A program made the translations under genes and the position numbers. Shown piece by piece: positions 18,082-59,538 of a stretch of DNA of 64,000 nt. Source of the DNA: Geosiphon pyriformis uo1 (lineage: Eukaryota > Fungi > Glomeromycota); assembly GCA_016748015.1 (NCBI GenBank), contig JAAOMT010000518.1, forward strand, positions 124,001 through 188,000, read 5' to 3'. The number at the start of each line of letters is the position of its first letter. Within the stretch, counting starts at the first letter, position 1. Below the pieces are notes generated by a model that worked only from the letters and a program-made list of their open reading frames with translations, made no database searches and was not told where the DNA came from.

Positions 18082-18176
18082 AATTACGGCACACCGCAAT
18101 ACTGACAGGGCCGTCAGTGTCTTAATTTCGGAGATTGGAGGGGTTCCGGTGCTTTTCACTGTGTATAGCCGTAATT
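18082..18176. other. GC-rich 95-nt fold-back element (candidate structured ncRNA or MITE)
   Basis: Terminal inverted repeat AATTACGGC/GCCGTAATT encloses two hairpins: ATACTGAC/GTCAGTGT and TCGGAG..TTCCGG. Confidence 0.4.
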
Positions 18177-22418: not shown

Positions 22419-25400
22419 GTGGCGACAAAAACCTCTAATCTTACTGTTCTTGAATTCTGCCGTGCTATTTACACACAAAATCAAAGTGATCTTAGATTAC
22501 CAGAAGGGTGTTGTCCAGCAGAATCTGCTCTCACTTATTATATCAACGCCAGAATAAATTATCATATAGGAAAGGAAGAAGAACCACACGATGCAAAACT
22601 TAGATTGTATAGAGAATTATCACAATACACTACAAAAGAAGTAGCAGTAATAGCCGCAACTATTGTCAAAATCCATCGAGAAATTGAGCAATACGCCAAC
22701 GAAAATTTTCCAATATCTACAGGAAACACTAGGGAACGTGCCAACAAAACCAAAGAAAATTTAGAAACTAATCAGGAAAGTAACCAGATGTGTATAAGAG
22801 ACAGCCGACTCGTGGTATCAAAGCCTGGAAACAAAACCCACGAGCTTCGCCGAATTTAAAAATGCACTCCTGGAGTATTTTAGCGACCCAAATGCCGTAA
22901 TCCAACTACAGAACGAATTCAATACTATCAAGCAAAATACTGGTGAAACTGTCACCCAATACCTTGCTCGATTCAATCAAATTCGCCGTCAGATTGAAGC
23001 AATTGAACAAGGATACTACACTGATCCTCAGGTTTTAAATCAGTTTATTAGAGGATTAAAAAGCAGCATTTTAGGAAGAGTACACCCTGCCCACCCTAAT
23101 TCCTTACCAGAAGCCGTTACACTCGCCAGAGCCCTTGAATCGGCTGAGAAAAAAGCTAACCATAGTCAAATGGTTAACATGGTAATGGAGGAAAATAAGA
23201 CAGAAACATTAGAGAAAAGAGTAACGCGATTAGGGGAGGAACTCTCTAAGAAAATAGAAAGTTACCTCATCCCGGATCCGAGAAAAAATACATACCAACC
23301 ACCTCAAAGACGCAGCCAGGAAGTCAGCAACAGTCGAAATAATCGCTCGTCACGCCAGGAATTCAGAACAGAAACACGCACCTGCCATTTTTGCAAACGC
23401 ATAGGACATTTGATTAGTCAATGTCGAATGCAAATGATGCAGGAAGCATGCGAAAATAATTACTATGCACCACTCCAAATGCCCAGAAACCAGTACACGC
23501 CAATACCACGCCAATATCTCACCACATATCAAAATCAAGGAGCTTACCAGCAACAGCCCATGATAGCCAACCCGAATTGGCATCCCGAGGCCTGAAATCA
23601 GCCCATGTGGAACCAGAACGCGTTGGTCCAGAGGAATCCAAACCGCGCCGGAACCAATCAGCAAACCAATCCAAACTACCAAAATTATCAACAAACTTAC
23701 CTTAATATACCAGAAAACCTGATCATCGGAAACAATGACGGTAGAAACATAAACAGAACCAAGAATTCCTCCAAATTGAGCCAGACAATACCACCAGCAG
23801 TTGCCACCGAAGATAGCAGCCTCGCAGCTATTTTTCCTTTTGAATTAGAGGAAAACGAGGCTATGTTCAGTGGAGCAGCATTGGACGAAAAACGCCCAAT
23901 TACTGCTATGTATACGGAAGCCACTGTAAACAATACCCCAATCAAACTTATCTTAGACAGCGGATCCGCTGGAAGCATCATAACGCTTCAACTAATAAAC
24001 CAACTGGGTTTCAAAGTTGATCATGCCACGATGTCCCAAATCATAACAGCCGATAGAAGTACAAAGCTGCCTTATGGCGAAATTGACTCATTCCCTTTCG
24101 AAATTAACAGCATAGTAATACCTACAAAAGTATTAGTAATGGACACTACACAATATCAAGCGTTAGTAGGGAATGACTGGCTAACAAAAGCCAACGCCAC
24201 CTTAGACTGGACCACCCAAGAGCTTCTGATCAATTATAATGGCCACCAGGCCAAAATTCCAGCCACCTGTGGCCACTTCCAAAAACCCAGCGCCAACCAA
24301 AGACCTACCTTTGAATTTGAGGAAAATCCAGCACTACCAGCCATTGAAACCTATCAGCTCTCTTGGGCTGATGACCAAAAAACAGGACTACCAGCCGTAC
24401 CAACGTGGACCAGCGAAGAAAAATCCGAATGGAACCAGGTAAGTTCACAAAGAAACCACCAGCGACGCAGACCAAAGCTAGAATGCTCGGTTTGCAAGAA
24501 GAAACTCTCGTCTATGACTGCATGCAGCGCACCAGATGAAGACCCAAGAAACTCCACCCACTACTATTGTAACCGTTGTAACAAAGAAAAATACGGTTAC
24601 TCAGAAAGACACGGAAAATGGGACGAGAAACCGTGCCTCGCTTGTGGAGAACCGTTATCAAGAGGGTGCGACTAGAACGACTTACCAGGCAGAGGAGAAA
24701 TGTGTGACACAACTTGCCAATACATGATCCTCATCTGTGACTGGGTAAGAGGAGGAACGCCGTTCGAAGCAGCGTTCAACAGAGCGTTAAAAAGACTACA
24801 GCACTACTCACACGATGAGGACAAGTTGTACAACACCGCACAAGCCAAAGTAAGAGGAGGAACCGCCGAAGAAATACAACGTTGGAAAGAGTCAGCCGAA
24901 GTAGCCGACGAAGTCGCCAACTACAACATGTTTGACCCAGTGGACGAATTCCAGGACTACTACCAACAACTATGCCCCACTCGACAAGAGCAAGAACAAT
25001 ACCTCGCCCAAATCAACACTTACCTCTGCGAAAACTGTCTCATCCCATGCCAAAGTCAGTGCTATGAAGAGTGTCAAGACGAAAGGGACTTAGAAAGAAA
25101 AATGGAAATTGAGAATCAGCAGTCTCAAAATCAATTAATAAATCAACAAGACTCACCTGACGGTCCCGAGTCAGAAAAATTTGTAGCCTATACTGACCTA
25201 GAACAGGTGACTGACATCCGATACTTCGACAACGGGCACTTAGGAATAATACCCGAAAGAGCCCATCCAACCGACGCCGAATTCGATCTATGTTATTCGG
25301 AAGACCAATCCACAACGTTACCACCCAGGAGCATCACCAAAATTGACCTAAAAATAGCGGTTGAAATTCCGCCAGGAATAATGGTTCAAATGGCGTCGCG

Positions 25401-26022
25401 ATCAAGCTTCGCGAAAAAAGAAATAAGCGTTTAAGGAGGAGTAATTGACTCCGGATACACTGGAAATTTGATGGTTTTGCTACAGAACAATTCAGAAAAG
25501 CCTTATACTATTGAATCTAAGGAAAAGATTGCACAAGCAATTTTCCTACCATTGGTAAAAATTGGGAAATTTGTGCCAGTGGAAAATCGTGAGGAATTGT
25601 CACAAACAACGAGAGGAACTTTTGGTTTCGGATCGACAAGAAAAAGAATTGAAGCGAATTTCACTGAAACAATAGAGGAAAAAGGCGAAGTAATTAAAAA
25701 TGAGCGGTCCATCACGCTCCTACCATATGGAAAATCAGAAATAAGAATAAAAAGGACAATTAAAGAAAAAGACCTAATAATTGAGCCCTACTCAGAAACT
25801 TGCCAACAGTTTCTTATAGGACTTACTAACCTTTTTATTCCAGCTGATAAAGCTCAATAGATAAAAATTCCTATTGCAAACACCACAGAAGAACCTGTCT
25901 ACATTTCGGAAGACACCATCATTGGATACCTCGGAACGGAGCTAGAAAACACGTCAACACCACAAGAAATTCTAAATTTCCCAGAAATCGCCCTCTACTG
26001 TGAACTCACTTCAACAAATTAA
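22419..26022 (+). pseudogene. Gag-protease-dUTPase polyprotein remnant
   Basis: Capsid-like ADSWYQSL..LQNEFNTIKQ..ETVTQY..F, knuckle CHFCKRIGHLISQC, protease LILDSGSA and dUTPase motifs DAEFDL, ASRSS, GVIDSGYTG, IAQAI, RGTFGFGST. ORFs starting at 23170, 23605, 24700 and 25468 share one frame broken by single stops. Confidence 0.9.
22786..22804 (+). other. Tn5 mosaic end / Nextera adapter (assembly artefact)
   Basis: Exact 19-mer AGATGTGTATAAGAGACAG inside gag, at a point where the frame changes. Confidence 0.95.
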
Positions 26023-26981: not shown

Positions 26982-29900
26982 TTGGTAATGTATTTTAAAC
27001 AAAAATTGTTGGTGGCTTTTTATTTTTCTCTCTTTATAAACAAAATAATTCATCAAAAGTTGACTTTTTCTCAAAAATAAAGTCTTTTTTATTGGTTATA
27101 TTAGACATTAATAATAAATTTACAGTTATTAAACACAGTTTTACAGATCTTACAAAACAAATTAATAAGTTGGCAAAAAGATTGAAAACACTTAGATTAA
27201 TAGTTTTCCAGTTATGTCTTGAATGTCAATTATTGGTAATCTTTTTATTGCAGAATTAAAAGATGAATATAGTAATAAGTAAGAGTTTAGATACAGTTAC
27301 TAGCAACAAAACTATAACAAAAAAAAGTTTTCTTTTATTTCAAGACATTATTAGTTTAGAAGCAAGCATAAACAATTTGTTTAATATAATTATAAATCTG
27401 TTAACCAAAATAGAGAATATTGGTTTGAATTTAGGCACTTTTTTCTATTAATAATTAATTTAGTTTAAAAAATTTCTATATGTAATATTTGAGATATCAA
27501 TGTTTCTATTAAGCAAAAGAATATTGTTTGTTGACATATAGATTTGAATAACATAATTTTTATTATTATGATAATAAAATTAAGATTTAATATTAGATTA
27601 TAAATTATGAATAAGTTTAATTAGATACAAATTTTTACATTTGGTTTAGATAAAAGTTTTTTTAATATTAAAGTGGCTATTATTATAAACAGTTTTTGGC
27701 TTAACATGTTTTAAAAATAAAAAAAATTTCTGGTTGAATTATTTCTATTCAATTTTTGTTTAAAGGAAAATTTTCAATTACAATCTTTAGTTTGTATACT
27801 GGTTTTTTTGCTGAGATTAAATTTAGTTAAACATCAAAGATTAATTTTTTTATTGTTAAAATAGTTAATTTCAACTTTTTTATAGTTTTGAGTAGAGATT
27901 TTAATAAAGATAAATCAAAAAAAAGTGCAAGTTTTAAGTTTTGCTTAAATTTAGGTTTAGTTAATTTTTTTAGTGACTACTTATTAATTAAAACTTCTAT
28001 GTAAAACAATTTTAAAGATATTAAAAAAATTATTGATTATATTTTTGTGGATAAAAATTTGTTATCTGTAGTTGTTAGTTATAGAGTTTATCTTGTGGTT
28101 GAATTTTTTAATGCTAATTACAAAGTGGTTTTGGTTTTGGTTGGTCTAAAAGATTTTTTAAATATTTATTTAAACAATATATGCAAACAAGCTAACAAAA
28201 ATTATTGAAAGTTTAAGATAAAAAAGCAAATAATTTCAAATAAACATGTTTTAAAAAGTGCTCTTTAATTAATTATTTATTAAGGTTAGGTGAATTTATA
28301 AATACTAAAAGTCTTAATAATTTAAATGTTATGTAAAAAGTATTAAAAGAAATAATAGTGAATTTAACCAATAAAATGTTTTCTAAACATTAGTTTAATA
28401 AAGTTGATTGTTTAAAAAACAAGCAATTTTTAAAGTTTTTCAAATTAAAACTATTGGTTTTTAAGATTGTTAAGAAATTGAGTTTGAGTAATAAGTTTAA
28501 ATTTGATTATTTTACTAAAACTTGGTTGTTTATTAATAGTATTAAGACTTTAAAAATTTGTAAAATGGTTTAAAATAGCATAAAAATAATGAATATTATT
28601 AAGCATTTATTAATAATCAAAAAAAATTATAGAAAGTTCAAGTACTATAAATTTAAAACTGCTAAAAATATATTTATTAAAAAAATAATAGAAAAGCATA
28701 TAAAAAATTTTTGTTTTAACAAAAAGTATATAATAAAAAAATTTTTGAAATTTTTTTTTTGTAAAATAGTTTTTGATTATTTAGTAATAAAAAAAAAGTT
28801 AATTCTAAAGCTAAGTAAAATAAAACTTGAAGTTGACAAAATTATGAAAAATTAGACAAAAAAGCAGATTGTGTCTTTAAAGTTATCTAATCTGTAGTTT
28901 TATTAATATGTATTCTTAAAATATATAAATAATACTGCTTTTTTAAATATAATAAAAGATTTTAGCATAAATAAGTTGGTTTTAATAATTAAAAATCTGC
29001 TTAATAGTAAAGCTACTAATCTGTTTAATATATTTAATGAACTTTAGAATTATTATAATAATATAATGATAAGATATCTATTGGTTCTAATGAACTTTTA
29101 TTTGGTTTTTAGTAATATTCCAATTGTCTTAAAAAGGGCATAAGTTTCAATGATCTTTAAGTCTTATAAATAATATGATATTTTAACAAAAATTTGTTTA
29201 TTGTACTAATTGAAATTGCTAAAAAAATCTTGTTCAAGATTTTTTTAAATCAGATTTTAATAACTTATAGCAAATTTGGTGTTCTTTAAAATAATAATTT
29301 CTCGGTTTTAAAAAGCATTTTAACTCAGTTTTCTGTGTTTATTATTGGTTTAATAATTAAAAATGTTCTAAAAAAAACAGAAAGCTTTAATTAATATTAC
29401 AAGATATATATAAAACATATAATTTGATTGAATATTATTATTTAAAAACTAGCTTACAGCATATTAAAATATATGACCAGTTTATTGAATTTTTTGGCAA
29501 TATACATAAAAAAAAATAAACAAAGTAATAACTGATTTTAGACTTTTAAAAAATTATAAAATACATAACAAACTAGATTAAAATAAAATTTTTTCATCTT
29601 TTTTGTGAAAAATATTTTATGATTCTTTTTGTGTAAGGTTAAAAAACATAAATATTTATATAAATACCAAATTGATATTAAGTTTATGATTAAGACTGGT
29701 AAAATAAAGAATATAAAAGAAAAAATATTGTTTTTTGCAGTAAATGTTTTGTTAATAACATAATTTAAATTAAGAATAGTTAAGCTACTATGCAATATAT
29801 TTTGGATATAATTAGCAAATTTTTTAAAATTAATAATATTTTGATCAATAATAAAAAAACAATCGCTATTCTTATTAATTAGAATATAAAAATAGCATCT

Positions 29901-30020
29901 TTAAAGATTAGTAGTGTTACCCAAGTAGAAAAACCAAAAAGCTATAGAAAAACGTAACAAAGAAATGTGACAAGAAAAATGTGGTACAACTCAAGGTAAC
30001 ACAGAACAAATGAAAGCAAT

Positions 30021-30150
30021 AGCTAGCTATAACAAGCATTAGCTAGCAATAACAAGCAATAGCTAGCAATAACAAGCAATAGCTAGTAATAACAAGTATT
30101 AGCTAGCAATAACAAACAATAGCTAGCAATAATGAACAATAGCTAGCAAT
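30021..30150 (+). repeat. 20-bp tandem repeat AGCTAGCAATAACAAGCAAT, ~6.5 copies
   Basis: Directly visible, with no unique spacers. Confidence 0.9.
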
Positions 30151-30385
30151 AGTGAAACAATTGAAAGCAATCTTATAAAACCAAAAAAATGTATAAAAGC
30201 AAGTAGTTGTAAAAGTTTTTTAGTTAGTTAGTAATCAATTTTACTTTGTATTATACTTATTATATATCCATAAGTCCAAAATACAATAATTATCAAAAAC
30301 AAAATCTAATTTACCAATTCATGTTCTCCAATCTTACAGATTTTAATTGAAATTAAAATCAGTATTTCCTATCTTTGTTCCAGGA

Positions 30386-30730
30386 NNNNNNNNNNNNNNN
30401 NNNNNAGCTAGCAATAACAAGCAATAGCTAGTAATAACAAGTATTAGCTAGCAATAACAAACAATAGCTAGCAATAATGAACAATAGCTAGCAATAGTGA
30501 AACAATTGAAAGCAATCTTATAAAACCAAAAAAATGTATAAAAGCAAGTAGTTGTAAAAGTTTTTTAGTTAGTTAGTAATCAATTTTACTTTGTATTATA
30601 CTTATTATATATCCATAAGTCCAAAATACAATAATTATCAAAAACAAAATCTAATTTACCAATTCATGTTCTCCAATCTTACAGATTTTAATTGAAATTA
30701 AAATCAGTATTTCCTATCTTTGTTCCAGGA
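30386..30730. other. Scaffold gap (20 N) followed by a re-copy of 30061-30385
   Basis: 30406-30730 appears identical to 30061-30385, as expected for an unmerged contig overlap. Confidence 0.9.
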
Positions 30731-33329
30731 CAGATGTCATTAGCATAAATGCTTTGAATTCTTAACAATTTAGACCAATTGCTCTTGATTATGGTAATTG
30801 ATGGAAACTAATTCTTTTTTTTTTTTCTCTTTATTTTTTTTATTTTTTTTTTTTGTTTGGAGCAGCAATATAGAAAAATTGACTGTCTTGGAATAAACTT
30901 TGTGATAGTCTGGTAAAAAAGAAAAGCTCTCTCTAAGTTTTGGATATTAATGTTATCTTAGTAGCTTACCAAAAGGGTGAAAAGACAATGCCAGACCCTA
31001 ATAACTGCACTTGTTAATGTGGAGAAGAAAGTTCACATCTATGGAAAACATTGCAATCAACAAAAAACAAACTCTGTGTCTTATAACCAAAAAACTCAAT
31101 GGGTAAATTCATATCCAAGAATAGACCTTCAGAGATTGATAACACAAACACTGTGGAAAGAGCAAACAACCTTGAAAGACCAAAAAAATTAGAGTACCAA
31201 ATATTACTATTATACTCTATCCAGTTTATCCATAACAGTAATTTACTAATTTTAATTGCTAAAAAGAATAAATTACACAATTATTTAGAAATTTTTTTGT
31301 TAACTGAGGAATTATTAAAGCTAAGTATAGCTAAAACTTATTCTAATGTTCTGTTTTTTGCCAATATAATACTAAAAAAAAACAATTAAAAAATTTTAGA
31401 TAATAACAGAACTGATTTGTTGATAAAAAAAACTGCTTATTCCTTCTATTTTTTGTTAAGTGATATATATAAACATTTTATGATGACTAAAAAGATGGCA
31501 GTATTTGGCAATACTTGTTATTTTGTTTGTAATTTGTATAGATTTGTTTATTATATTTAATAGAAAGTTGGTTTTAGTTTTGATATAATTTCTGATTCAT
31601 TAATTTAAAAAGTGAATTAATCTTTGACTGTACAAATATAACACTCTAATTTACATATGTTTTCTAGATTTATTAGCAAAATTTCAGCCAATTTGCATAT
31701 GTACTTAATAAAAACAGTACATAAAAAACTGTCAATAATAATTAAAAAAAGATTATATAACAAAACCTATCCTAATGTTTTATGTTTATTATATAAAAAG
31801 ATGAAAATATTAGATTATGTATTTATTTATTCTAAAGATATTGGTGTTTATAAAAAACTACTGTTGAAACTTTTTGATTATTAAATATTATTGGCTGGTG
31901 TTTATACTTTTTTTATCTCTATTGTATTATAAATATTGGTTTTATGTACATTTAATGTAGATTTGTATGCTGTAATTTGTAAAGATTTTGTTTTAAAGAA
32001 GTGGTTATTAAAAGCTGTATTAATTTTAAAAATAAAAAAAAGGCAGTTTTAACTGTTATTAAGTTTGTGTAATGTTTAGTAAAATAGCACTATTCAAGAA
32101 TTTGGCTTCTTAAAGCTAAGTATAAAATTAATATAAAAAAAGCTGGTTTAATTGATAATATTAATATTTAATTGTTTTGTAAATTACTAGTTTGCTTGTT
32201 AAATGAAGTAATTTAGTTATTGGAAGTTATCAAGTTTTTTATAATTAGTTTTGGTTAGTGTAATCTGTATTTCTTTTTTTCTGGTTTAGCAAGTAAAATT
32301 ATTATTAATCTAAATATGTAATAGTGTTTTATTTGATTTAAGTAGCTGGTCACATAAAGTAAATATATGAATTATATTTAATTTAAACTTTTTAATTTAA
32401 TTTTATGTATTAGATAACAATTAAACTTTATTTATAAAATAATGATAATAAAAAATTAGATTATTAATTAGATAATAATATTTAATAATATAATAATTTA
32501 ATAAAAATAAATTAAATTGTAATATATATTAATTGATAATAAAAATTATTAACTTAAATTTTTATTAATAATAATAATAATTTAAAAATTTAAAAATTTA
32601 TTTAATTTAATTTAAACAAAAACAATCTGATAATTAATATTAAAAAACTTTATTATATTTAATATTTTTTGACCAATTATAATATTTATAGATAATATAT
32701 TAATAAAAATATAGTTTATTATTTCTTCTACTTTTTTAAAAAATTTTTAAGTTGTAATTTTAACCAAAAAACTATTGTTTAAAAAATTAACTAGTTTTAA
32801 ATCTAAATACTTTTTAAAGTTTGCATATTTTTAAAAACTATTTTTATTAAAATTACTATTTATAATTACAAAAAAATTTTATTTACAGTTTTCAAATTAA
32901 TTTTACCAGTTTAAACATGTTTTATTTTTATAAAAATACCAATATAAAATTTTAAAATTACAACAAAAAGTTTGATTTTAAAAAACAATTTAATTAATAA
33001 TAGTTAACTAATTATTTTTAAAACTTTATATATATATTTAACCAAACTTATTTTTATAATAAATATAATACCAAACTTTAAATAACTAAAATTCAAACTA
33101 AAAATAAAGATTTTTATCTTATTAAACTTATTTATAATTTAAAATTTAATTTAATTCTTTAATTTAATTTTAATAATAATAAATATTAAATTGTTTGAAT
33201 TTTTTTGCTATTTTACAATGTTTTTTTGTTTTATAAAATTATTTATTACTTTTATTTTACATGTAATAATTTTCCAAAATAAATTATTTATTAAAAAAAA
33301 TATATAAAACTTATTTTTGAAAAACATCT

Positions 33330-34340
33330 TATTTAATCTTGAAAGCTTGACCAATTTAGTAACTATATATAAATACTTTATTATGGCTAATAGTCTGCTG
33401 GTTTCTGGTAATGTTTGTCATTTTGTTCAGAACATTTTTAAGTCAGTGAATTAGATGCATTAAAAAACTGGTTTTGGTTCTAGAGTTTTAGGTAGTTTTT
33501 TAGTTTGTAATATTGATTAATCTATACTATAGCAGTTTGACATCCTGATTCACATATATTATTAGAGTTTATAAGCAAGACTTCAGTTGAATTGCACACT
33601 TATTTTATGAAGATTGTCTATGATAAACTGTCTATTGTTGTTAAGAAAAAACTTTATGCCAAATATTACTCTGGTGTTTTATGTTTGTATTATGAGGAGA
33701 TTAAGTTTTCTAATTATGTGTTTATGTGTTATAAGAAGTTCATCTCCTGCAAGGCAATTTTGTTTAAGTATATTTTATGTTGAAGGTTTCTGGCTGGTTC
33801 TTGTCTTTTCACCTCTTCTGTAGTTGTGAAATCTCTTCTCTCATGTTTATCTGATGTCAGTCTGTATTCTCTTTTTTACAAAAACTTTGTGCTTGCAAGG
33901 TGGTTTGAGAAAATGATACAGATTTTTGATGATTATAAAGAAACTGCTCAGATTTTGGTTGATTTTGTGTATGGTTTGGATGTTTGACACCATTCTAAGT
34001 TGTGAAGATTTAGGTCTAGGTTTAGAGTAGATATAGAGAGAAATAATTTAGTTAGTAATTTAAGGGTAATGTCTGTGGTATTTGTTGGCTTAGTGCCAGT
34101 TTTTTTGGATAATGTGATTAAATTAATTGATATTAATGATTTATTTAGAATTAGTTTTGGTTTCTGTATATCTTGCTTGTTTTTTTCTGGTTTAGATGGT
34201 GAAGCTACTATTTATATAAAGGCTTAGTGTTGCTTTGATTAGTCTAAATGACTGGTTACATATAGTAAATACATGAATTGTATTTAGCTAAGGTCTATAG
34301 TTTTGACTCTATATACTAAATAGTGATTGGGCTGCATTCA
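33330..34340 (+). mobile_element. 5'-truncated LINE fragment (ORF2 C-terminus, 3' motif, A-tail)
   Basis: HTYFMKIVYDKLSIVVKKKLY..YSGVLCLY is homologous to 61190-61320. The 3' motif is at 34225-34325. Confidence 0.8.
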
Positions 34341-35499
34341 TAAAATGTTAATAAAAAAAATAACTAATTTAAAAACAACAAAAATAAAAATACTAAAACT
34401 TACAATTAATATACTAAAAAATTTTCAAAAAAAATATCTAAAATTAAATCAAAAACAGAAATTAATACTATAAAAAAGTAACAAATTATATAAAAAACAA
34501 GTAAAAACAAAATATTCAATCTAAAAAGTATTTTTAAAATTTTATTATAATATATTCAATTTTATTTTCAAAATAAAGACTTAAGCTTAAAAAAATATCA
34601 AATAAAATTGGTTTTAACTTATTATTATAACCAAAAAAATAATTAAAATAATTAGATATACAAAATATAAACGTTTTTTTTGTATAAAAACCAACAAAAT
34701 AAATTTAAATAATTTCTAAAAATACATATTTATTAAATTTTTTGGAAAAAAATTATATTCTAATTTAGTATAACCAAAACATTTACAATTTTTACAATAA
34801 ACCAAATTCAACTTAATTTATAATAAATTAATTTTATTAAATACAAAAATAATATAATATATTTTATTTTATTGTTAATAAATATGTAATTAATAAGTTT
34901 TTTTACCAGTTTTTTTAAAAACTTTTCAAAGTTATGTACAGTAAGATTTATAAGCAAAATAAATAATACAGCTCTAAACTTATTTTTTTGTTCTTAAATA
35001 ACTTAATTTTTAATAATTTCAGTTATAAAATTGAATTTTACCAATTAAAATAGATTAATTAAAAGCTAAAAAATTAATTTGACTTAATTTAATAAACTTT
35101 ATTATAATTTTTTGTTACAATTTAATTAATTGTAATTAAATCAATATAATTTTATTAAATTCAGACAAAACTAAAACAATTGTATTTTTAAAGCATTTAT
35201 TAGAATTTTTTTAATAATTATTATCAGATCTAAATATATATTTAGCTTTTTAAAATTATTATTTACTAAAATATTCTTATTAATAGTTAATACTATAGCT
35301 TTTTTAAACAATTGTCTAATATAAACATAGATTTAATAATTTTTTAAAATTTTAAAAAGATAATAATCTTCTTAAAACTATTTATAATTAAAAATAATTT
35401 TATAATCATTTATATTTTTTCGATAAATTTTTTTTTAATAGTTAAAAGATTAATTTAATTTTTTTTAATAGTTATTTTTATTTTTTTTATTGCTATAAA

Positions 35500-36085
35500 A
35501 GCTTGCTGGGAGTTTCTACTAATGGAAATATAATTGCTGATTCACTATATGAGATTACTTTTTCTATTGACTTGTACATAGCACTGGTTAAGAGTTTTGT
35601 GTTAAAGAGTTGGGTGGCTGACACAGTAGGCTGTTTGGGTGCTGATTTTGGTGGAGATGCATTGGTTGTTAATTTTGTTCATCATTTTGCTGAGAGTTAC
35701 AGATCTGCTGTTTGGCTGCTTATAGCTAAGTTAAAGTTTTATTATGAGAAGCATAAGCTCCTGCTGCATAATAGTTCTTCTGTTCCTTTAGTATCTGGTT
35801 TGTCTTCCTTATGGTTTGCCAGAACAATTCGGGATTTCAGTTTCAGGTTAGGTATTCATGTGTGCTTTGGATTGTATCTATGTCTAACCAAATCAGATTT
35901 TGGTTTCTTGAGTGATGTTTTTGTAGTAAAAAATTTAAGTGTGTAGTGCTGTCTTGATTGGCTTAAGTGGTTGGTCACGTATAGAAAAGGCATAAGCCAT
36001 GCTTAATTTAGATTCTGTTTTTGATTCTATGTACTTAGGTAGTGATTAGGCTGTACTCGTAAAACTTATAAAAAAAAAAAAAAAA

Positions 36086-36140
<55 letters not shown>
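35500..36140 (+). mobile_element. 5'-truncated LINE fragment with long poly(A)
   Basis: ORF 35503-35946 is homologous to the ORF2 C-terminus (LVKSFVLKSW vs LCKGFVFKKW). The 3' motif spans 35945-36057 and is followed by a ~70-nt A-tract. Confidence 0.85.
35945..36057 (+). ncRNA. Conserved cis-acting four-way-junction RNA structure in the LINE 3' UTR (best-resolved copy; others at ~6441 partial, ~32322, ~34225, ~38290, ~39375-39494 minus, ~42525-42640 minus, ~61818)
   Basis: Manual fold gives P1 35945-54/36048-57 (central U-U), P2 35955-62/35970-77, P3 35978-82/35990-94 (AGAAAA loop) and P4 35995-36006/36035-47 (bulged A). Pairing is largely preserved across the divergent copies. Confidence 0.65.
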
Positions 36141-36141
<1 letters not shown>

Positions 36142-36599: not shown

Positions 36600-38415
36600 A
36601 ACTTTTATTTAAATTTATTTTTTTTAATTATAATTAAAACAAAATATAAAAAAGTTGTAAATATTACTTTTTTATAATAATTAAAGTTTTATAAAATATA
36701 GATAAAATATTAATAATATAATAGTTTTTAAGGCATTTTTTTTTAATTAATAGTTTTTTTTCAGTTAAAATTTTTTTTTAAAAAACATATTAAAGTTTTT
36801 AAAATTATTTTTATTTTTTTTTAAAACTTTAAAATTTTTAATAATATGTCTCTTAAAATAAATTAAAATTAATTATTAATTATATTATTAAATATAATAT
36901 TATATTGTGAATTTTTACTAATTTTAAAAACAAAACAAAATATATTTTTATATATTTTTTCAATTATTAAAAATTTTTTGAATAAATAGTTTTTATTTTA
37001 ATGTTTAATAAAATTATTAAAATTAAAATAGCTTATATTAAGAATATATTCTAGTTTCTATATGGTTTTTTTAAACTTAATTATTAAAAACAATATTAAG
37101 TTTTTTTGTATAAAATTTATATTTTAAGTTTTTATAAATATTATTATATAAATTAAATTTGCTAAATTTTTTTTTATTTTGAAAATTATAAAGTCTTTTG
37201 TAATTTTTGTTAATATTTTATTTTTGTTATTATTATCTTTTATAATGTTTTTTTAATACTATTTTGATAATATTAAACTATTTAAAATGTTTTTAATAAA
37301 GTTGTTTTAGTTAAATTAAAGCTTATTAATTTGTGATTTTATATTATTGTTTATTTTTATTTTTAATATTGTTTTTGTTTATTGGCTTGTATTAATATAA
37401 AATAGTATTAAAATTTTGTTTTTAGTTAGTTAAAATAAGATAATTGCTTTTTAAAATACTTTTAAAGCCAAATTAATTAACTTTTTTTCAAGTTATATTG
37501 TCTTTAAAATTAGCAAACTGGTTTTTTAAATTTATAATTATACTTGTTTTATTTTTTATTTTTTTAATTCTACTTAATAATTACAATATGTAATTATATT
37601 TGATTTTTAAGAAAATTTGAATATTATAATTATTAAACCTAATATTTTAAAAAAATATTGTATTTGATAATAAACTTTTAATTATTAATATTGTTTTAAA
37701 TATTAAATTTCAGATTATTTAACTGTTAATTATATGATATTATTATCTTTTTTTTTAAGTTTTTTAGTAATTTCCAAGTTTTTAATTCATTTTTATTAAT
37801 ATTAAGTTTTATATCAAGACTTTTGTTCTTTTAATTTTTTTTTTATCATATTTTTGGCTATTTTTGTTATTATTATTGTTAATTTTATGGTTAATTCTAG
37901 ATTAAATTTTTTGAAATTTCAAATCTTTTAATTAACTGTATTAATAAAATTTGTTGTTGAATTAATTAGTTTTTGGTTATTTTTTTTAATTATAAATAAT
38001 TAATTAAGTTATAAAGTAAAATTTAATATTATTACAATAATTGTTATTATTATAAGCTTTACTGTTTTTTGGCTAATTTGTTTAAAAATTTTGTTAATCT
38101 TAAAAATAAGATTAAATTTGGTCAAATAAATAATAATAAAATAAAATTTGTTAAGTTATTTTTTTTAAATAAGTCAATTTTTAAATATTTAATAATATTA
38201 TTATAAATAAGTTTTTTTAATATTAAGAATGATTTAGAAAAAATTAGATTGTTTTTAAATAAGTTTATTTTTACTTTTAGTTTTTTAGTTTAATTTAGTT
38301 TTAACTAACTTAAGTGGCTAATTACATGTAGAAAGTACATTAATTATGGCTATATTAAAATTTTTTGAATTTTATGTAATATTTAATAATTAAATTATAT
38401 TTTGTTAAAAAAAAT
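36600..38415 (+). mobile_element. Heavily decayed second copy of the ORF1-only element
   Basis: 37432-37525 aligns to the reverse complement of ~40330-40425. The 3' motif at ~38290-38405 and an A-tail follow at a similar distance (~0.9 kb). The 5' boundary is approximate. Confidence 0.6.
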
Positions 38416-39358
38416 TAAAAATTTGTATTAACAATATTTGATTAAAAAAAACTTAAAATTTATTGTTTTTAGCAATTTTTTTAAGTGTATAAAGATATTA
38501 TTTTAAATTTCAATAACTATTATGTTAGTTTTTGAAACAAATAAAATTTCTTAAGTTAAAATATTATGCTGTCTTGAAATTTATTTTGAATTAAGATATT
38601 TTTATCAATTATCTTTTTTATAAGTTTTAATAAAATTAAACAAGATAACAATATTATAAAAGTTAAAAAAAAAATTTTAAAAAATTTAACTTACTACTTT
38701 AACTTAAAATTTAAACCAAAAATTAATAATAAAAAAAACAAAAAAGATTATTTTAACTTAGTCAAACAATTTACAGCACATCAAAAATTATTACCAAATA
38801 TTTACAAATATTTAAACAAGAAATTTACATTAAATTATCACTTTTAATCATATTTTTTTCAGCTTTATTTGCTTAAACTTAAATAATTAACTTATCACTA
38901 ACTTATTTTTTAAGATTGAAAAACTTTTTATTACCAAAAAATCTAACTCAATAATAAAAACAAATTTACACAAGTATAAATATTATTAATTACTTAACAA
39001 AAAATTAAAATAAATATTTAGAAACACTAACAAATAAAGAAAACATTTTTGAATTTATTAAAAAAAAAAAAAATAATAACTATATATATTATTAAAATCT
39101 CAAAATTTTCAGAGAAATATTAAAACCAGTTCTTAAAAATAACTTGATAAAATCATAAAAACAAAAGATATAAATAAATAAAATACAACAAAAATATTAA
39201 AACAATTTTTTATTTTTTTTAAAAAACTATTGTTAAATAGTTTAAAAACTTAAATACATTTTTTAACAGCTAATAAGTATTTAAAAATGCTTTTTTTAAG
39301 CTATTTTTTAAAATAGCTTTTAAAACATTAAACAAGAGTTAATTGAATCTGTAATAAC

Positions 39359-41630
39359 TTTTTTTTTTATTAGAGTTTAATAAACAAGATCCAATCATTA
39401 TCTAATACAATATGACCATATAGAATCTTAAATTAAATGTGGTTCACGTGTTTTCTACATGTAACCAGCTACTTGAGCCAGTTCAGGTTATACTATGTTG
39501 ATGCACTAAAAGAAAACTTATCCAAAGATGACATTTTTTGAATGACAAGAAACAAAGTCACACTGCAAAGAACCAATCCAACCAGTCATTCAGCTGTCTT
39601 CAAGGCATTAACTTTAATATCAATAGATTCATGTTTCCAAAGGAACATCAAGTTAAAAAACACTTCATTATCCAAACCAACTGGGTGTTTTGAATCACCA
39701 GACATATCAATATCCTCCATGTAGCATTCTTTTTTTAAAGAAACCACTTCTCTTCCCAACTTATCAACAATTTTACTAAAAGAATCCAAATGTATTATAA
39801 TCTCATTAACTTTAAAGCCAAGTTTACTGCTTAAGACCAAATCTCTATTAATAAAATGTTTGAACAATTTGACCAAAAAACCAACTGGTTTAACAATAGA
39901 CTCAACCAAAGCAGAAAGCTTGACCAAATCAAACTTCAAAGAAGCCAACTGAAAAGACACTAAAAGATTACCAATAATTATAGAAGAAGAAACAGGAGCT
40001 GCCAAGAGAAGAAACTCAGAAGAATTCAAGAAAGCAGAAGCTTTTACATAAGAAACACTACTCATAAAATGTGTTCTAAACACTTTGGGAGCCTTAAGAG
40101 AGAGAGGTGAAGAAACTTTGCAGTCTACAGCCAAATGGTTCACCTCTTAATATTTAAAGCAGTGTTGACAATTAGGGATTTTCCACCAAATACGGCATTT
40201 TCTTAAGGTACTAGTTTTGACAATTGCAGAGTCCAAATCAATTTGGAAACCAAACATAACCAGAGCAAATTAAAAACAACAACCAGAATCAAGCAAACAA
40301 AGAATGAAACAAGTCTGGCCACCAACCTAAAAGATCATATCACTAATCTCAAAAACAGTACAACCAGAAAAAAGATTGACCAACTTGGCCTTAAACTGAT
40401 CACAAAACAAAATTGTCTTATTTTGATTGATAAGAGAAAAAATATAAACACTATCTTTGTCCACCAAAATCAACCAGTAAATAAGAGCAAAAGCAGCAGC
40501 ATCCAATTTTTTAAAGTAAACAATCACATATTGCCAAACACTAGCAGGTTTCAGTATGACACAAAAAACTTCACCAAAAACACTAAGAGCTGACTTAATA
40601 TTAGCAGCAGATACATCCAAAGGCACATCACACAGTGCAATAGCAGCAAAAAAAGAACTAGACTCAGAAACCACCAAAGACTTGGCAATTTTAAAAGAGG
40701 CAAGATGAACAAAGCTTGTAAGCTCAACCAAAAATGCAGCATTTAGAGAACTTAGGGAAGCAAACTCCACACAAAAGAGTTTTATATTGTCCTTAGAAAC
40801 AGATTTTGCACCCAAAAAACCATGTATAGACTAAAAAACAGTCTTAACATAAGCCAATTTGATCTTAAAAATAGCATCAGACACCAAAAAAGAGGCCATT
40901 CACTCAGCAAATCTTTAATAACTAGCAATAGTTTCCCAAGCACTACCAGCAGCAGCACCAGAAACCAGAAAGGGAGATGATTTGGTTTCCATTTGGTCAG
41001 CCCAGTTTTCTGAAACAGATAACACTACAAAAGATGATTGGTTTGCTTTTAAAACTGGTAATGACCTACTAGAAGACTCTACATTTGACAACACAATTAG
41101 TAATTGATCTTGGCCTATCTTAGATATGTGCTGGATGATATTATAAAGATCTCATCTAAAATCTCATTGGAAACCACAAAGAGGTTTAGTGTAACAATAG
41201 CAGAGGCAAGCGACTGCCTCTACTTTTCTGAACTTTTGGTCTTTTTGACCATTTTTTTTAAAGAGAAGGTGTTAACAGCACCAGATGTTGAAGCTATGAA
41301 GGGGAATACCAGCTTGTTAACTGGTCTATTATTAAATATTTTTGGGCTCTTAGTAGGAGTAAAGGCAACACTGGGACTAATCCAAGTGTGTCTTTTTGAA
41401 AAAACTTTAACTGGTAAAAAACCAGTCAAAAATGAGAAAGTTGCTTTAGTAGCTACCAAAGGCAGCTTTTTATGATTATTAGGTAAAGGAAAGGCTTCTA
41501 AAACGTTCTGCCTAGTTGTTTTTACTACAGAAAGAGCTCTTCTGGTTAAAATTTTATTAAATATTAGGTATAGCTTTCTTACTCTTTGCTTTGATTATGG
41601 TCATAAAATTAAGGAGACAAAGAGTGTTTA
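39359..41630 (-). mobile_element. ORF1-only non-autonomous LINE derivative (half-LINE), ~2.3 kb
   Basis: A single disrupted ORF of ~700 codons (ATG 41604 to TAG 39493). It has an ORF1-like RRM region (IALCDVPLDVSAANIKSALSVFGEV..WQYVIVYF) and a degenerate knuckle CFK(Y)xEVNHLAVDC. The LINE 3' motif and poly(A) follow directly, with no APE or RT. Confidence 0.8.
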
Positions 41631-42505: not shown

Positions 42506-44955
42506 TTTTTTTTATTATATATTTTACAAGTATAGTCCAACTATTACTTAAAACTATAGAATTATATAAGCTTTTATATTAAGTATGGTTTATGTATTTT
42601 CTATATATAACCAGTTATTTAGGCCAATTAAGATAACACTAAGCATCTAAACTACTTACAACAAAAAGATTATGCAAAAAACTAAAATAAACACTAAACA
42701 ACCAAAGATACAAACCAAAACAAACATAAATATTCAGCCTAATATTGAAATCAAAAATCATATCAGAAAACCATAAGAATACTAAACCAAAAATGACCAG
42801 TATCACAAATCTATTATATAGTAAAAAGCCACACTTTATATAATATGTTTTTAGCTTGGCAATCAGCAATTATATAGTAAATCTGTAATCTTTAACAAAA
42901 CCACAGACTAATTTAATAATCAGAGATATACTATTAGAATCACCACTTAGTAAATATATTATATCAACTATCTAATCCTTTATTATAAACTCTTTGATTA
43001 AAGACATATATAAATAATCTAAGGACTTAGTTTTATATAAAGATTTTATTATTACATTATTAGTGGCATAAACATCCAGTAAGCTAGATTAAATTTTAAT
43101 AGTTGTCAAGATCAAGTTTTTCCTAGCACTAGTATTGTAAGTACAAGAAAACATGTAATCTAAGTTCTTAATTAACTTATATCAAATACACAACATATTA
43201 GGATAGCTTAAATTGTACAGCCTTTTTCTCACAACTACAGGTAATTAGTAATGTAGAGCTTTTATAAAGTAAGATTAAAGTGCTGCAGAAACAGAGTTGG
43301 TAAAATTAGCTCAAAATTAACTATCAGAATGCCATACATTAAATGTTTTTTTCACATTAATTTGGTCATGTAGAGTACTATCTACAGCACTATTTGCACA
43401 CTTAGAATTTTAATCAACAAAATTAACAGCATCAAAAATACACCTAACAAAATAATGAGTGTTCTCAAAAACAAGTTTGTTTTTAATAAATAGAAAATAA
43501 CATAACATACTAATTGGCAATATGAAATCAGATACAGTGGCAATATTAGCCAAAAAATCAGCATGCTTATTGTCAATAATTCCAAAATAATTCCTAATCT
43601 TGTTTCAATAAACTGACAAATTCTTTGATATAATTGTCTTGTAAATATGCTCTCTTTTTATTTAGCATTTATTGTAAAAATTAGGACTTGTATTTTTCTT
43701 AAACAAAGCATACATATCCAAAAACACTTAATTATCCATGTACAAATCAACTAAACTAAATGCTGGAATATTTTCTAAAGCAAGAACAATGACTTGCAGT
43801 TCCACCATAGTTGAAAAGAGCAGGTTATATACTTTAACTTTTATATTTTTACCAATATTCGGAAAGTAAACAGCAGTACTATCATGAGCACTAACAAACT
43901 CCAAATTTTTGATTAAACTGTTTATATAAACAATTATACTACTAGATTTATTTTTCAAAAGATGCTTACTAACAGATTTAAAATTGGTCAAACAGCAACT
44001 AGGAGTAAGATCAGAAGCTAAAAAGCCACTATTAATTAAATTGTTATTTTCAATAAACTTGACTAGCAAATTAAACCAACTAGGAATTAGTTTCTTGGAA
44101 TATAATTTCTTTTATCTGCAAAAATTACTCTATATAAAACACATGTTTTAATAATCCAAAAGCTAATTTGTAAAAATAATACCAAATCTCTTTAATGAAT
44201 TTATTATATCCAAATATTAATCCAAGTTCAATATGTTAATAACAGTAACATTATTATTAACTTGGAAAACATTTGGCAGATCAATACCCAAAAAAAGTTT
44301 ACATATTACCAAAATGTTAGTTATATTAGCCAAAAAGCAATTCATAGAATTAATCAATAACATAATTGGAAAATTAAAAGATTGCTAGAACATCTAACTG
44401 ATAGTCTGCAATTTATAGCTTTGTGTTTGAATAACTTGCTAAGAATATCTTTTAAGTTGACAAAAATTACCACATTTACCAGAAGTTTTCTGTCTGTATT
44501 TATTTAAAAGCTTTAAGATTATATAACTTAGAATAAAAAATGGCTTTATTGGAGAAATTTTTAGACAAATTGGTCTTTAGCTTAAGTCTTTTTCTTAACA
44601 ATCTGTCTTATTTTTTACACATATTTGCAAAAATATAACTGAACTGCAATCTGTAACCAACAATTGGTTGTAAAACAGCAAACACCAAATAAAAAAACTG
44701 TTTGTCTAATACTATTTTTTTTAATACTAAGTTTGTAAAAAACTTAATACCAAACTAAGCTTTAAAAAACTAGGCTTTAAAAGACCATCAGTAAACAGAA
44801 AAATGCCCAAGTATCTATGAGATTTGCTTTTTTTAATAATAAAAATATTTGATCTATTTATTAACAAATAATAAATTTCTACCCTTTGGTTAATAGGTAT
44901 AACTACTGTCTTATCTGTATTTATTAAAATATTATTGACCTAAAAAAACTCATTT
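42506..44955 (-). mobile_element. 5'-truncated decayed LINE (RT C-terminus, RNase H, C-terminal domain)
   Basis: RNase H remnant IIVYINSL..STMVELQVIVLALE..VDLYMDN (43728-44069) and a C-terminus similar to ORF 35503-35946. The 3' motif is at ~42525-42640 with a T-tract at 42506. Confidence 0.85.
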
Positions 44956-45416: not shown

Positions 45417-47271
45417 TGATAAATTTAAACCCTTTATTCTTGACTACAAAGTCACCATTGGCTGTAGTATTGCTGTCATGAAAAAGACTGCTAAGATTTC
45501 TGGTTTTAGTAATGGCTCCAGGCCTGTTTTTTCAAGAAAAAAAAAGAGAGGTGGTGTTTTAGAGGATGGTTTTGGTGGTAATATTGTTGGTCCTAAGGTC
45601 TAGATTAGTCATTCATGGGGTTCAGAGACTGGTAACACTACTGAGTCTGATAGTATTGATATAGAAAAGGAATGTCTGATGGAAGAGACCAGTTTTGATT
45701 ATGGTAAAGATGGTGTTTTTGCTGGTAATACTGATCAAACACTTACTGGTTTAAAAGTTAAAACCAAGAAGACATTGGGCAAGCCTTTGGGAAAAATTGA
45801 TTTCTCTTTAAGTGACAATGATAATAATGTTTTTTTAGATGCTCCATTGGAGCTCCCCCTATCTTTAAAAAATCTGGTCAACATCTCTGTTCATAAATCC
45901 TTCACTTTGGATATTGGTTTGAACAAGATGGTTGAGAAATCTTTTCAAAAAAAACTTCAAATAGTCAGGAAGTTGTTTTCAAAAATCAATGGTTTTGGGG
46001 AAGCCTCTACCCTCTCAAAATTTGCTGGGATCATCAGAGCAATATTTACTTCTGAATTAAGTTTGGCACAGGCTTCCAAAAAGGCTGAAGAAGTAAAGAT
46101 TATAGTAAACTCCAATCTCAAAAAATTATCTGGGCATTCAGATCAGACTGTAGTGTTAAAGAAGATTCCAATTGGTACATTAACTAAGACTGTACATACT
46201 GTGCTATCTGAGTTTGGCATTATTAAGTCAATCAAGATGCAATTGGTGGGGCTGTGGCAGAAAGCAGTGGTTGAATTTGGTCAGATTGAGCATGCTGATT
46301 TGGTTACAACACATTGGTCTATCTTGATCAGAAAAGATGCTATGCATGTTGCTAAATCTAATGTGAACAAAGAATTATAGGATGTGTGAGATGTTTACAA
46401 AGCTCTTTTGTACATTCTGTTAATAGAAACCAATGCACATGATATTTGGGATTATGTTGCTTCAGTGGGTGAAAAAACTTGTGTAATTAACTGTCATCTG
46501 GTTTTTTATGCCCAGGCCAGGTGTACTATTGTTTATTTTGATTCTGCTGAGTCATTGGATGCTGTCATAGAAATCACACCTGTTTTAAAGGAGACCAATC
46601 TGTGCTGGTCTTGTTTTGTTTTAGCCAAGTGTGCTGGATGTGAGAAATTGGGCCATACATTATTGGCTTGCCATATTGGTGAGAAAAAAAATGTTCTTTC
46701 TGGTGCTTCATTATAGAAAACTCTCTCAAACTCAGATAAAAGTAGGCTGGCTGCCATATATGCCAAATGTTCAGCTCCAGTTGCTCATTCTGTTTCTTTT
46801 GGTGGTATTTCATGAGCACAAATTGCTGGTGGATCTTCTTTCCTTCCTTCTCCTGTTTGAAATGTTTTGTTGAAAGCTGGCTCCTCTTTAGAAATGAAGC
46901 CTATCCCATGGGTATCTTTGAAATTAAATGATAGGTTTGTCACTTTTGAGCACAGTCTTACCAGTTTTGCAGAGCGTGTTGACATGTTGGCTAAGAGGTT
47001 GAACACATCTGAGCCAACGGTTTCTCAGCTTAGCCCTGGATGTTAGCCATTGATGATCTCTTCATCACAGAATTAAGGGGCAAATATAGTGATGAGTGAG
47101 GGTTTGGGTGTGGCCACTGGTGATGAGACTGTTGTGGAAGCAGTGGTTTTTGATCCTACAGTTATTTCAAGATTGAAAAAAACATTGAACAATCTTTTAA
47201 TTACAGTTATGAATCTTTCGGCTAAAATGGACAATGCTGATTTGGTTTCTACTCCTCTTCTTTTTCAATGA
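45417..47271 (+). pseudogene. LINE ORF1 (RRM-like + CCHC knuckle + coiled coil), disrupted by stops
   Basis: VVLKKIPIGT..VLSEFGIIKSIKMQLVGLWQKAVVEF and CAGCEKLGHTLLAC. The stop TGA overlaps the ORF2 ATG. Confidence 0.85.
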
Positions 47272-50200: not shown

Positions 50201-50662
50201 GTGCCCTCACCATCCTCTGTTTTTCCCTTCTTATATTAATATCAACCCTTCAAACAATTTTTTGGCTGGCATTGTCTGAATTTTTTTGGGGTGCAATTTT
50301 TCTCTAGGTAATCTTGTGACCAATGCTTTTCATTTTCCAAGTAGAACCCCTATGTTTGTCATTCTTGGTGAGCCCACCTTTTATAAATGTGTCTCTTTAC
50401 TTCAGCAATATGGAATTGTCTTTGTTGAACAGCTTCGCAGTCATACTGGTTCTGTTTTTAAATAGAGGACTTTCAAGCAGTGGAAAAGATTGGACTTTTG
50501 AGGCCCAGTTTCTCATTGGTTTGATGTTTCTGTTTGCTATCTGAATAATTCTGGGCCACCTTCTATTTGTAATTTTCTGTTGCCATGTATTGATTCATCT
50601 AATATTCTTGAGTCTTATAAGTTTGAAGTTATATGTAATCATCTGTTGAAGGTTGATTCTGG

Positions 50663-51644: not shown

Positions 51645-51655
51645 TAATCTTCTCT

Positions 51656-52332: not shown

Positions 52333-52449
52333 TATAGGAGATTTGAAATAAAAGAAAATTATTTTTGGTGTATGGGTTTTTATGTTATTTTTGTTTTGTT
52401 TTTGTGAGATTGTTTCTAAATTATAAGGGAATAACTAGTAAAATTAAAT

Positions 52450-59400: not shown

Positions 59401-59519
59401 TTCAATTCCGTCTGAAATGTTGAATCTTTACTTGCAGTGGGTGTAAATTGACTGATAATACTCTAGAGTTGTTGTGTCTGGTGTGGTCACCACTTTGAAT
59501 TTGTTGTTGCTGTGTTATT

Positions 59520-59536
59520 TCCATGGGAGAGCACCA
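59520..59536 (-). promoter_or_regulatory. Primer-binding site
   Basis: TGGTGCTCTCCCATGGA starts 2 nt after the 5' LTR on the minus strand. Confidence 0.8.
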
Positions 59537-59538
59537 AA

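Follow-up and report, generated by a model that had tools for sequence, protein, structure and literature searches.

Results

A recurrent module closes the LINEs of the window

The stretch of DNA analysed here (the window; 64 kb, contig positions 124001-188000, 28% G+C) comes from the 128-Mb assembly of Geosiphon pyriformis, a glomeromycotan fungus that hosts Nostoc. The NCBI homologues of the LINE protein all carry this species name, and one of them is 100% identical. At the locus under study, an open frame of 147 codons at the 3' end of a LINE remnant terminates in TAG, and from that triplet onwards a module of ~120 nt leads into a short tail and an A-rich tract. We mapped the LINEs of the window by tblastn with full-length Geosiphon LINE proteins, and scanned the 64 kb with a covariance model that was built from six window copies of the module (alignment A2) and run without filters; BLAST of the focal stretch against the window likewise returns relatives on both strands. 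The elements are as follows.

27.5-32.3 kb, + strand: LINE (tblastn)
33.3-34.2 kb, + strand: LINE remnant (tblastn)
35497-35943 (35.5-35.9 kb), + strand: remnant of an ORF2 C-terminal domain, 5'-truncated, stopping at the stop codon of the focal module (tblastn 25-30% identity; BLASTP E 1e-5)
40795-39496, - strand: body of an ORF1-only element ('half-LINE'), with an ORF1-like part at 40599-40081 (E 3.5e-9)
44.97-42.7 kb, - strand: LINE (tblastn)
45600-50660 and 60518-61816, + strand: RNase H-bearing LINE, in two parts around a 9.8-kb insert (tblastn)

The module copies and the tail of the focal copy are located at:

6418-6519, + strand: 5'-truncated copy that starts inside helix P2 and is followed by an A-run (24.1 bits, E 0.017; BLAST 89% over 27 nt)
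30636-30742, - strand: marginal ninth match (E 0.17)
32319-32439, + strand: heavily decayed copy (14% G+C) that closes the LINE at 27500-32318 (84.9 bits)
34225-34345, + strand: copy after the ORF2 remnant at 33308-34224 (119 bits)
35944-36064, + strand: focal copy, ~120 nt, running from the stop codon TAG at 35944-35946 up to the base that precedes the A-rich tail (120.6 bits, E 1.5e-23)
36058-36141, + strand: short conserved tail CGUAAAA, a few variable bases and a tract of ~70 A in the focal copy (sequence, column conservation)
38291-38409, + strand: decayed full-length copy (47.4 bits, E 1.4e-7)
39376-39495, - strand: copy at the end of the ORF1-only element (106.8 bits)
42522-42641, - strand: copy that closes the LINE at 44969-42708 (106.3 bits)
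61817-61936, + strand: copy that closes the RNase H-bearing LINE, the RNase H being assigned by Pfam (121.6 bits)

The scan thus yields six strong full-length copies (85-122 bits), one decayed full-length copy, one 5'-truncated copy and the marginal ninth match, reproducing the eight copies, seven of them full-length, that had been counted in a first-pass annotation of this DNA. That annotation had also put the module at the 3' end of every LINE and half-LINE, and indeed each LINE mapped in the window, as well as the ORF1-only element, ends with a copy. Its placement of the module between the stop codon and a point just before the A-tail is borne out for the full-length copies by tblastn and by the positions of the A-tails: these copies open with TAG or TAA, the ORF2 alignments reach that very triplet, and the A-rich tail begins ~5-15 nt after the module. 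The same holds for 45 of the 45 genomic copies aligned below, in which the module starts at the stop codon and stops 5-15 nt short of the A-tail. Directly after helix P1, the short tail reads CGUAAAA in the focal copy and YRUUAAA in most copies. No open frame runs through the module in any reading frame. A diversified group of non-LTR retrotransposons has this module as its entire 3' untranslated region, and, as is expected of the tail of a stringent-type LINE, the conserved sequence and structure of the module lie directly upstream of the A-tail. At the focal copy, the length of the ~70-A tract suggests that the insertion is young; no target-site duplication was found there.

Beyond the window, 200 kb sampled at arbitrary points of long contigs contain 10 copies detected by a sequence-only nhmmer profile, which extrapolates to about 6,000 copies in the genome (roughly 3,000-12,000). 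When genome candidates were scored with the covariance model, 150 of 150 reached E <= 2e-15. For comparative analysis we used an alignment (A3) of 45 full-length copies, all from one genome, in which 28 are top matches of a model that already rewards P1, P2 and P4 and 17 were found by sequence alone. Since 26 of the 45 belong to one subfamily, the counts that follow are per sequence and not of independent events, and the p-values are indicative.

The upstream proteins are diverged versions of one ORF2 domain

The layout of the carrier elements is best seen in a near-complete copy outside the window (L046), in which an ORF1 with a CCHC knuckle precedes, in this order, endonuclease and reverse-transcriptase regions, RNase H and a C-terminal domain of ~230 aa, after which come the stop codon and the module. 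Pfam scores RNase_H above its cut-off and leaves RVT_1 sub-threshold (23.1 bits against a cut-off of 29.6), Exo_endo_phos likewise falling below its cut-off, and on decayed LINE copies Pfam is mostly blank; the nearest ESM Atlas clusters carry RVT_1, RNase_H and Exo_endo_phos_2. This is the layout of the RNase H-bearing AP-endonuclease LINEs (Tad1 / I group), and taken together with the host it makes 'Tad1-like' a plausible label. A Cys/His motif is visible in the ORF2 C-terminal domain, for which AlphaFold returns a poor model (mean pLDDT 46.7).

Scoring 1.5 kb upstream of each aligned copy, we obtained a match to the ORF2 C-terminus of scorable length in 38 of the 45, with identities to a reference copy (L004) of 25-80%. 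The earlier observation that the proteins upstream of the module differ therefore stands as regards their divergence and falls as regards their kinship, as the supposedly different proteins are diverged versions of a single domain, all of them C-termini of the same ORF2 family.

This common yardstick allows the divergence of the module to be set against that of the coding sequence. Relative to L004, nucleotide identity of the module is 86-95% where the ORF2 C-termini share 52-80% of their residues, 76-87% where they share 47-50%, and 59-71% where they share 25-43%. At 50-60% protein identity the module is 82-91% identical, and in lineages whose ORF2 C-termini are 25-37% identical it is still 62-68% identical. 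In distant lineages, nucleotide similarity is confined to the module, beginning ~10 nt before the stop codon. Judged by these identities, the module evolves much more slowly than the coding sequence that adjoins it and appears to be under strong constraint. Furthermore, its identity tracks that of the ORF (Spearman 0.93, n = 38), which argues for vertical inheritance without swapping between families. Both observations weigh against a module that has no function of its own and whose resemblance between copies comes from recent common descent or from a swapped tail: conservation far exceeds that of the adjoining coding sequence even among the lineages at 25-37% protein identity, and the correlation is not that of a tail passed between families. 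A degenerate 21-nt pattern of the P2/P3 core, run against metagenome contigs, gave three matches, none of which was confirmed by the covariance model.

The sense RNA is predicted to fold into a four-helix junction

Numbered by alignment column and positioned on the focal copy, the predicted fold consists of the following parts.

35945-35954, + strand: P1, 5' strand, columns 2-11, holding the last two bases of the stop codon (pairs 2-115 to 11-106)
35955-35977, + strand: P2 hairpin, 9 bp (columns 12-20 with 26-34), with the 5-nt loop YRAGU at 35964-35968 (95.6% of cells paired)
35978-35994, + strand: P3 hairpin, 5 bp (columns 35-39 with 48-52), with the loop AGAAAAN (90.7% of cells paired in 45 copies)
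35998-36044, + strand: P4 long arm, with base columns 56-64 paired with 93-102, bulged A99, an internal loop and a variable tip (base, 93.8% of cells paired)
within 35998-36044, + strand: P4 tip helix, columns 67-73 with 81-87, and tip loop (91.5% of cells paired)
36048-36057, + strand: P1, 3' strand, columns 106-115 (RNAalifold, pair counts)

On the 45-copy alignment, RNAalifold recovers P1 (columns 2-5 with 112-115 and 8-11 with 106-109), P2, P4 and the tip helix; P3 is absent from this prediction. The same four-helix junction, P3 included, is nevertheless the minimum free energy fold of nine out of 12 single copies drawn from different subfamilies, with z-scores of -1.8 to -4.1. The focal copy is a decayed example, in which two of the five P3 pairs are mismatched and the minimum free energy fold is not the junction (z -1.2), as it is in copies that have decayed less. 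Support for P3 comes mostly from conservation and from these single-sequence folds; its pair 35-52 is CG in 29 copies, UA in 4 and UG in 3, and just one P3 pair has double changes in more than one copy.

Helices P1 to P4 had been drawn by hand beforehand, and the alignment and pair counts reproduce them as drawn, down to the two P3 mismatches of the focal copy and a near-constant bulged A (column 99, 98% A). The helices had also been said to join without linker nucleotides, which is so between P1 and P2 and between P2 and P3 and does not extend to P4, which RNAalifold makes three pairs longer than first drawn and flanks with a 3-nt linker on each side. Conservation is not limited to paired columns: unpaired positions conserved at 87-100% include A23 and U25 of the P2 loop (98% and 100%, respectively), the AGAAAA loop, A53, U65-U67, A99 and U104-U105, a pattern that may reflect the requirements of a specific protein contact or of a tertiary contact. 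Additionally, G·U pairs make up 18% of paired cells and pairing drops to 78% when the opposite strand is read, from which it follows that the folded strand is the sense RNA.

A search for an already described Rfam family, proposed along with the hand-drawn fold, yielded none: at gathering score Rfam 15 has no match for the module anywhere in the window, and with the module alone at E <= 10 it returns one chance-level match to a bacterial sRNA (E = 2). Five further loci scanned with Rfam gave only artefactual miRNA-precursor matches, MIR841 and MIR5070 in L004, which stem from two inverted module copies. A tRNA or tRNA-like structure was also rejected, given that the arm lengths and loops misfit and that ARAGORN finds 0 tRNA genes in the window.

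Pairing is conserved beyond what decay explains

Across the 38 pairs of P1, P2, P3, P4 and the tip, 92.3% are pairable in the 45 copies, compared with 29-39% when the 3' partner is slid by 1-3 columns, and 23 of the 38 pairs have changed on both sides, compared with 3-10 in the slid controls; on each of five measures, 0 of 500 shuffles reach the observed value. Because 28 of the 45 copies had been picked by a model that rewards pairing, we repeated the count on the 17 sequence-only copies. In this small sample 89.6% are paired (30-40% slid), 20 pairs are doubly changed (3-9 slid), and 0, 6 and 0 of 500 shuffles reach the observed values of three measures. The claim of a four-helix junction conserved with covariation is thereby upheld.

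It was rightly cautioned at the outset that some apparent covariation could arise from C>T and G>A decay, and this is the remaining leg of the proposal that the module lacks a function. Indeed, the spectrum of unpaired columns is dominated by such changes (C>T 0.32 per C, G>A 0.23 per G), and the double changes in the helices are mostly GC to AU transitions. However, the substitutions within pairs are biased towards keeping them. In pairs with an A-U majority, A>G, which keeps the pair, occurs 46 times and U>C, which breaks it, 8 times, the reverse of the order in unpaired columns (A>G 0.027, U>C 0.062); in G-C pairs, C>U occurs 137 times and G>A 50 times, set against unpaired rates of 0.32 and 0.23. 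Transversions, any of which breaks a pair, are 3-20 times rarer in paired than in unpaired columns (T>A 0.009 vs 0.087; G>T 0.003 vs 0.065; G>C 0 vs 0.027). Furthermore, each of the six tip pairs shows double changes, UA to AU and AU to CG among them: pair 71-83 reads UA in 32 copies against AU in 4, and pair 73-81 reads AU in 32 copies against CG in 5. Outside the main subfamily, pair 6-111 is CG, UA, AU or UG according to lineage. Swaps of UA for AU, of AU for CG, and among CG, UA and AU cannot be produced by C>T or G>A decay. The distribution of variants among copies agrees with this, with 43 canonical and 13 non-canonical among pair variants common to at least 3 copies and 14 and 14 among singletons (Fisher p = 0.024); variants of the former kind were probably inherited from active lineages, and the singletons mostly represent decay after insertion. 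The transversion swaps, the pair-preserving bias and the depletion of transversions all counter the decay account, and, considered with the slow divergence of the module and its correlation with the ORF, make it highly improbable that the module is without a function of its own.

An ORF1-only family retains the module

The half-LINE family is represented by two good copies and fragments, the good copies being the window element at 40795-39376 (- strand) and a second at L045:2910-4328. Their bodies are 75% identical over 1300 nt (window element against L045:2910-4208), both include ORF1-like sequence, and neither body contains an ORF2 match; the module of the second copy lies at L045:4209-4328. 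The half-LINE ends an ORF of its own, different from ORF2, at the same stop triplet of the module. On the evidence of these two good copies and fragments, the tail is common to the LINEs and to a non-autonomous partner, another hallmark of stringent-type LINEs.

Discussion

A candidate handle for template choice

Here we have mapped a module of ~120 nt that probably acts as a cis-acting template handle, that is, as the 3' recognition element of a stringent-type LINE, with protein binding and template choice proposed by analogy to known elements. This is the most likely explanation for the combination of adjacency to the A-tail, constraint on both the structure and the loops of the sense RNA, and retention by an ORF1-only family. 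The same three features are compatible with the RT-recognition or RNA-stability element suggested in the first-pass annotation. In such a handle scheme the sense transcript would fold into the four-helix junction, closed by a P1 that contains the stop codon; the junction would serve as a binding site for ORF2p, perhaps joined by ORF1p, and the reverse transcriptase would so be placed at the adjoining A-tail for target-primed reverse transcription; and ORF1-only derivatives that keep the junction could be mobilised in trans.

The position of the stop codon raises a different possibility, namely that the module is a post-transcriptional element that stabilises the transcript against 3'-to-5' decay, directs 3'-end formation or export, or acts at translation termination. 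The stop codon is always part of P1. Its A2 and G3 pair with U115 and C114, and pair 3-114 is intact in every copy (GC in 35, GU in 6, AU in 4); where the stop codon is UAA, column 114 is U in four of four copies, without any A·C (hypergeometric p = 0.0014, with two of the four being sister copies). With the stop codon inside P1, a terminating ribosome would have to open the junction. That in the ORF1-only family a different ORF terminates at this very codon fits a role linked to termination or stability as well as it fits recognition by ORF2p, and adjacency to the A-tail is expected of a post-transcriptional element too. Additionally, an alternative pairing is possible between the P2 loop and the tail that directly follows P1 (92% pairable), which would allow for a switch; since the loop is complementary to columns 113-117, this pairing overlaps with outer P1. 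Covariation between columns 21-25 and 113-117 is, however, not above that of shuffles (134/500). There is also no known precedent of such a shape among post-transcriptional elements, and constraint of this degree across very diverged LINE lineages is rather the expectation for a specific protein-RNA contact. We consider a post-transcriptional role unlikely as the main explanation, bearing in mind that it and a template handle are not mutually exclusive.

A more speculative idea, and in our view a quite improbable one, would unite the two, with the junction serving as an assembly switch coupled to termination and giving cis-preference a physical basis written into the RNA fold. The stop codon lies in P1 whichever ORF precedes it (ORF2, or the ORF1-like frame of half-LINEs), and the terminating ribosome would melt outer P1 and free columns 113-117 for the P2 loop. 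As the ribosome leaves, P1 would re-form, offering a binding site to the protein just released.

The proximity of the A-tail also invites comparison with ENE elements, in that a U-rich P4 internal loop or junction strand might clamp the A-tail in a triple helix and block deadenylation. U65-U67 and U104-U105 are 96-100% conserved, the A-tail adjoins the module, and plant and fungal transposon RNAs offer a precedent (PMC12501189). Yet the opposed U-rich tracts are absent, the P4 internal loop being UU / UUGUA; the predicted fold pairs U67 and A68 with A87 and U86; and there is no Rfam match. An ENE-like clamp is accordingly very unlikely.

It had further been suggested that the module is possibly catalytic. 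A compact multi-helix junction with a conserved unpaired AGAAAA loop, A53, A99 and U104-U105 would suit a self-cleaving ribozyme that processes the LINE transcript. HDV-like ribozymes lie at the 5' ends of R2 and L1Tc, and hammerheads occur in Penelope-like elements and retrozymes. Against this, 0 ribozyme families of Rfam 15 match the module alone at E <= 10. Moreover, ORF, module and A-tail are contiguous in the genomic copies without exception, which means that the reverse-transcribed RNA had been cut neither beside nor within the module. Self-cleavage is therefore exceedingly improbable, and the suggestion finds no support.

For an RNase H-bearing group of fungal LINEs, the present analysis thus supplies a candidate template handle whose helices, conserved loops and natural compensatory variants are mapped. 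If the handle reading is true, the range of 'stringent' template choice would come to include a LINE with a poly(A) tail, in an early-diverging, mycorrhiza-related fungus. With a stop codon in its closing helix, the junction also makes it possible to test whether translation termination is linked to RNP assembly. Practically, the module is a precise marker for annotating the 3' ends of thousands of LINEs and half-LINEs in Geosiphon and probably in its relatives.

Comparison with known systems

In the full-text literature searched, of which coverage is incomplete, we found neither a 3' recognition element for the fungal RNase H-bearing LINE group nor a description of a structured 3' UTR in these LINEs or in Geosiphon. 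Related solutions are nonetheless known from other elements and RNAs, and they delimit what is particular to the module.

The cloverleaf of tRNAs shares with the module the meeting of four helices at one junction, and P3, with 5 bp and a 7-nt loop, has the dimensions of a tRNA arm. The module departs from it in a P2 of 9 bp with a 5-nt loop, in a P4 of ~45 nt and in having no U33-type loop. ENE motifs, which are reported to raise mobility in plant and fungal transposon RNAs (PMC12501189, citing Tycowski et al. 2016), are likewise structured 3' elements that sit beside the poly(A) tail of these transcripts. Their defining pattern is a pair of opposed U-rich tracts in an internal loop with flanking G-C pairs (PMC12501189), and this double U-rich internal loop between G-C pairs is absent from the module.

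Closer in kind are the stringent LINEs of the L2 clade, whose retrotransposition depends on a 3' tail to which a region of the ORF2 protein binds (PMC4176376, PMC1636434). Like the module, the tails of eel UnaL2 and of zebrafish ZfL2-1 and ZfL2-2 are conserved structured RNAs directly upstream of the terminal repeat, show compensatory changes in the stem and conserved bases in the loop, and are common to non-autonomous partners, which there are SINEs. However, an L2-clade tail is one hairpin, a few tens of nucleotides long, with short tandem repeats at the end, whereas the Geosiphon module is a four-helix junction of ~115 nt with the stop codon inside it and poly(A) at its end. The carrier is also different, belonging to an RNase H-bearing group with a CCHC ORF1, and its partner is an ORF1-only derivative of the LINE, in contrast to the tRNA-headed SINE of L2.

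A multi-helix fold is found in R2 of Bombyx and birds, where the protein grips a folded 3' UTR of several helices, positioned for target-primed reverse transcription (PMC10499050, PMC11194090, PMC12222951). Recognition by the element's own protein is established for R2 and predicted for the module. R2 differs in having a restriction-like endonuclease, a single ORF and one rDNA target, whereas the Geosiphon LINE has an AP-type endonuclease (weak Pfam matches) and is dispersed in thousands of copies; the two 3' UTRs have no sequence or Rfam-level similarity.

For a poly(A) end combined with a required 3' UTR, the closest precedent is SART1 of the R1 clade, which is of the stringent type though it ends in poly(A), its 3' UTR and poly(A) both mattering (reviewed in PMC3747384). 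SART1 differs from the Geosiphon LINE in being telomere-specific and in residing in an animal. Its 3' element is described as a stem-loop region and not as a four-way junction. The principle of a structured 3' recognition element is thus a known one, and it is the fold of the module and its host clade that are new among the literature and Rfam sources searched.

Arrangement and pairing of the LINE 3' modules

Among the 3' modules, the roughly 120-nt four-helix junctions that end these LINEs, convergent tail-to-tail pairs are frequent, their members lying 70-1000 nt apart across an A/T-rich spacer, both in the window and at other Geosiphon loci:

window 38291-39495, convergent module pair
L002:1501-2306, convergent module pair
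L004:1501-1810, convergent module pair
L006:1501-1813, convergent module pair

This tail-to-tail arrangement around A/T-rich sequence suggests that the LINEs concerned inserted into or beside older A-tails. At L004 the two modules make a long hairpin, which produces spurious Rfam matches to miRNA precursors.

Within the module, the loop of the P2 hairpin is complementary to bases that run from the end of the closing helix P1 into the beginning of the tail:

window 35964-35968 with 36055-36059 (columns 21-25 with 113-117 of A3, the alignment of 45 full-length copies), P2 loop and P1-end/tail-start complementarity

These columns are pairable in 92% of cases in A3, where they carry no covariation signal; this pairing and outer P1 are mutually exclusive.

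The module also ends an ORF1-only, non-autonomous LINE derivative:

window 40795-39376 (-), ORF1-only derivative
L045:2910-4328, ORF1-only derivative

The two bodies share 75% identity over 1.3 kb, with the module's stop codon ending the ORF in both, and body fragments of the same derivative occur at L027, L017 and L009.

Other features of the window

9343-10437 (+), leucine-rich-repeat open frame (LRR_8, E 9e-17)
18081-18176 (-), 5S rRNA match (Rfam, 43.1 bits)
23605-25434 (+), dUTPase and aspartic protease pair (domain search)
30386-30405, assembly gap of 20 N within the LINE at 27.5-32.3 kb
50660-60518, insert of ~9.8 kb in a LINE, ORFs on the minus strand (domain search and LINE protein map)

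The leucine-rich-repeat frame is probably a host gene; transposon remnants surround it. The 5S rRNA match, barely over the gathering score of 38 bits and internally deleted relative to the Rfam model, may represent a gene or a pseudogene, or it may form the head of a SINE derived from 5S rRNA. The assembly gap adjoins short repeated module fragments from the region of the long P4 arm (~30292-30313 and 30637-30658). The ~9.8-kb insert interrupts a full-length LINE, whose parts lie at 45.6-50.66 kb and 60.5-61.8 kb; its minus-strand ORFs encode domains of a dUTPase and of an aspartic protease of the retroviral type, resembling the plus-strand pair at 23605-25434, and the insert looks like an LTR-type retroelement bearing a dUTPase.
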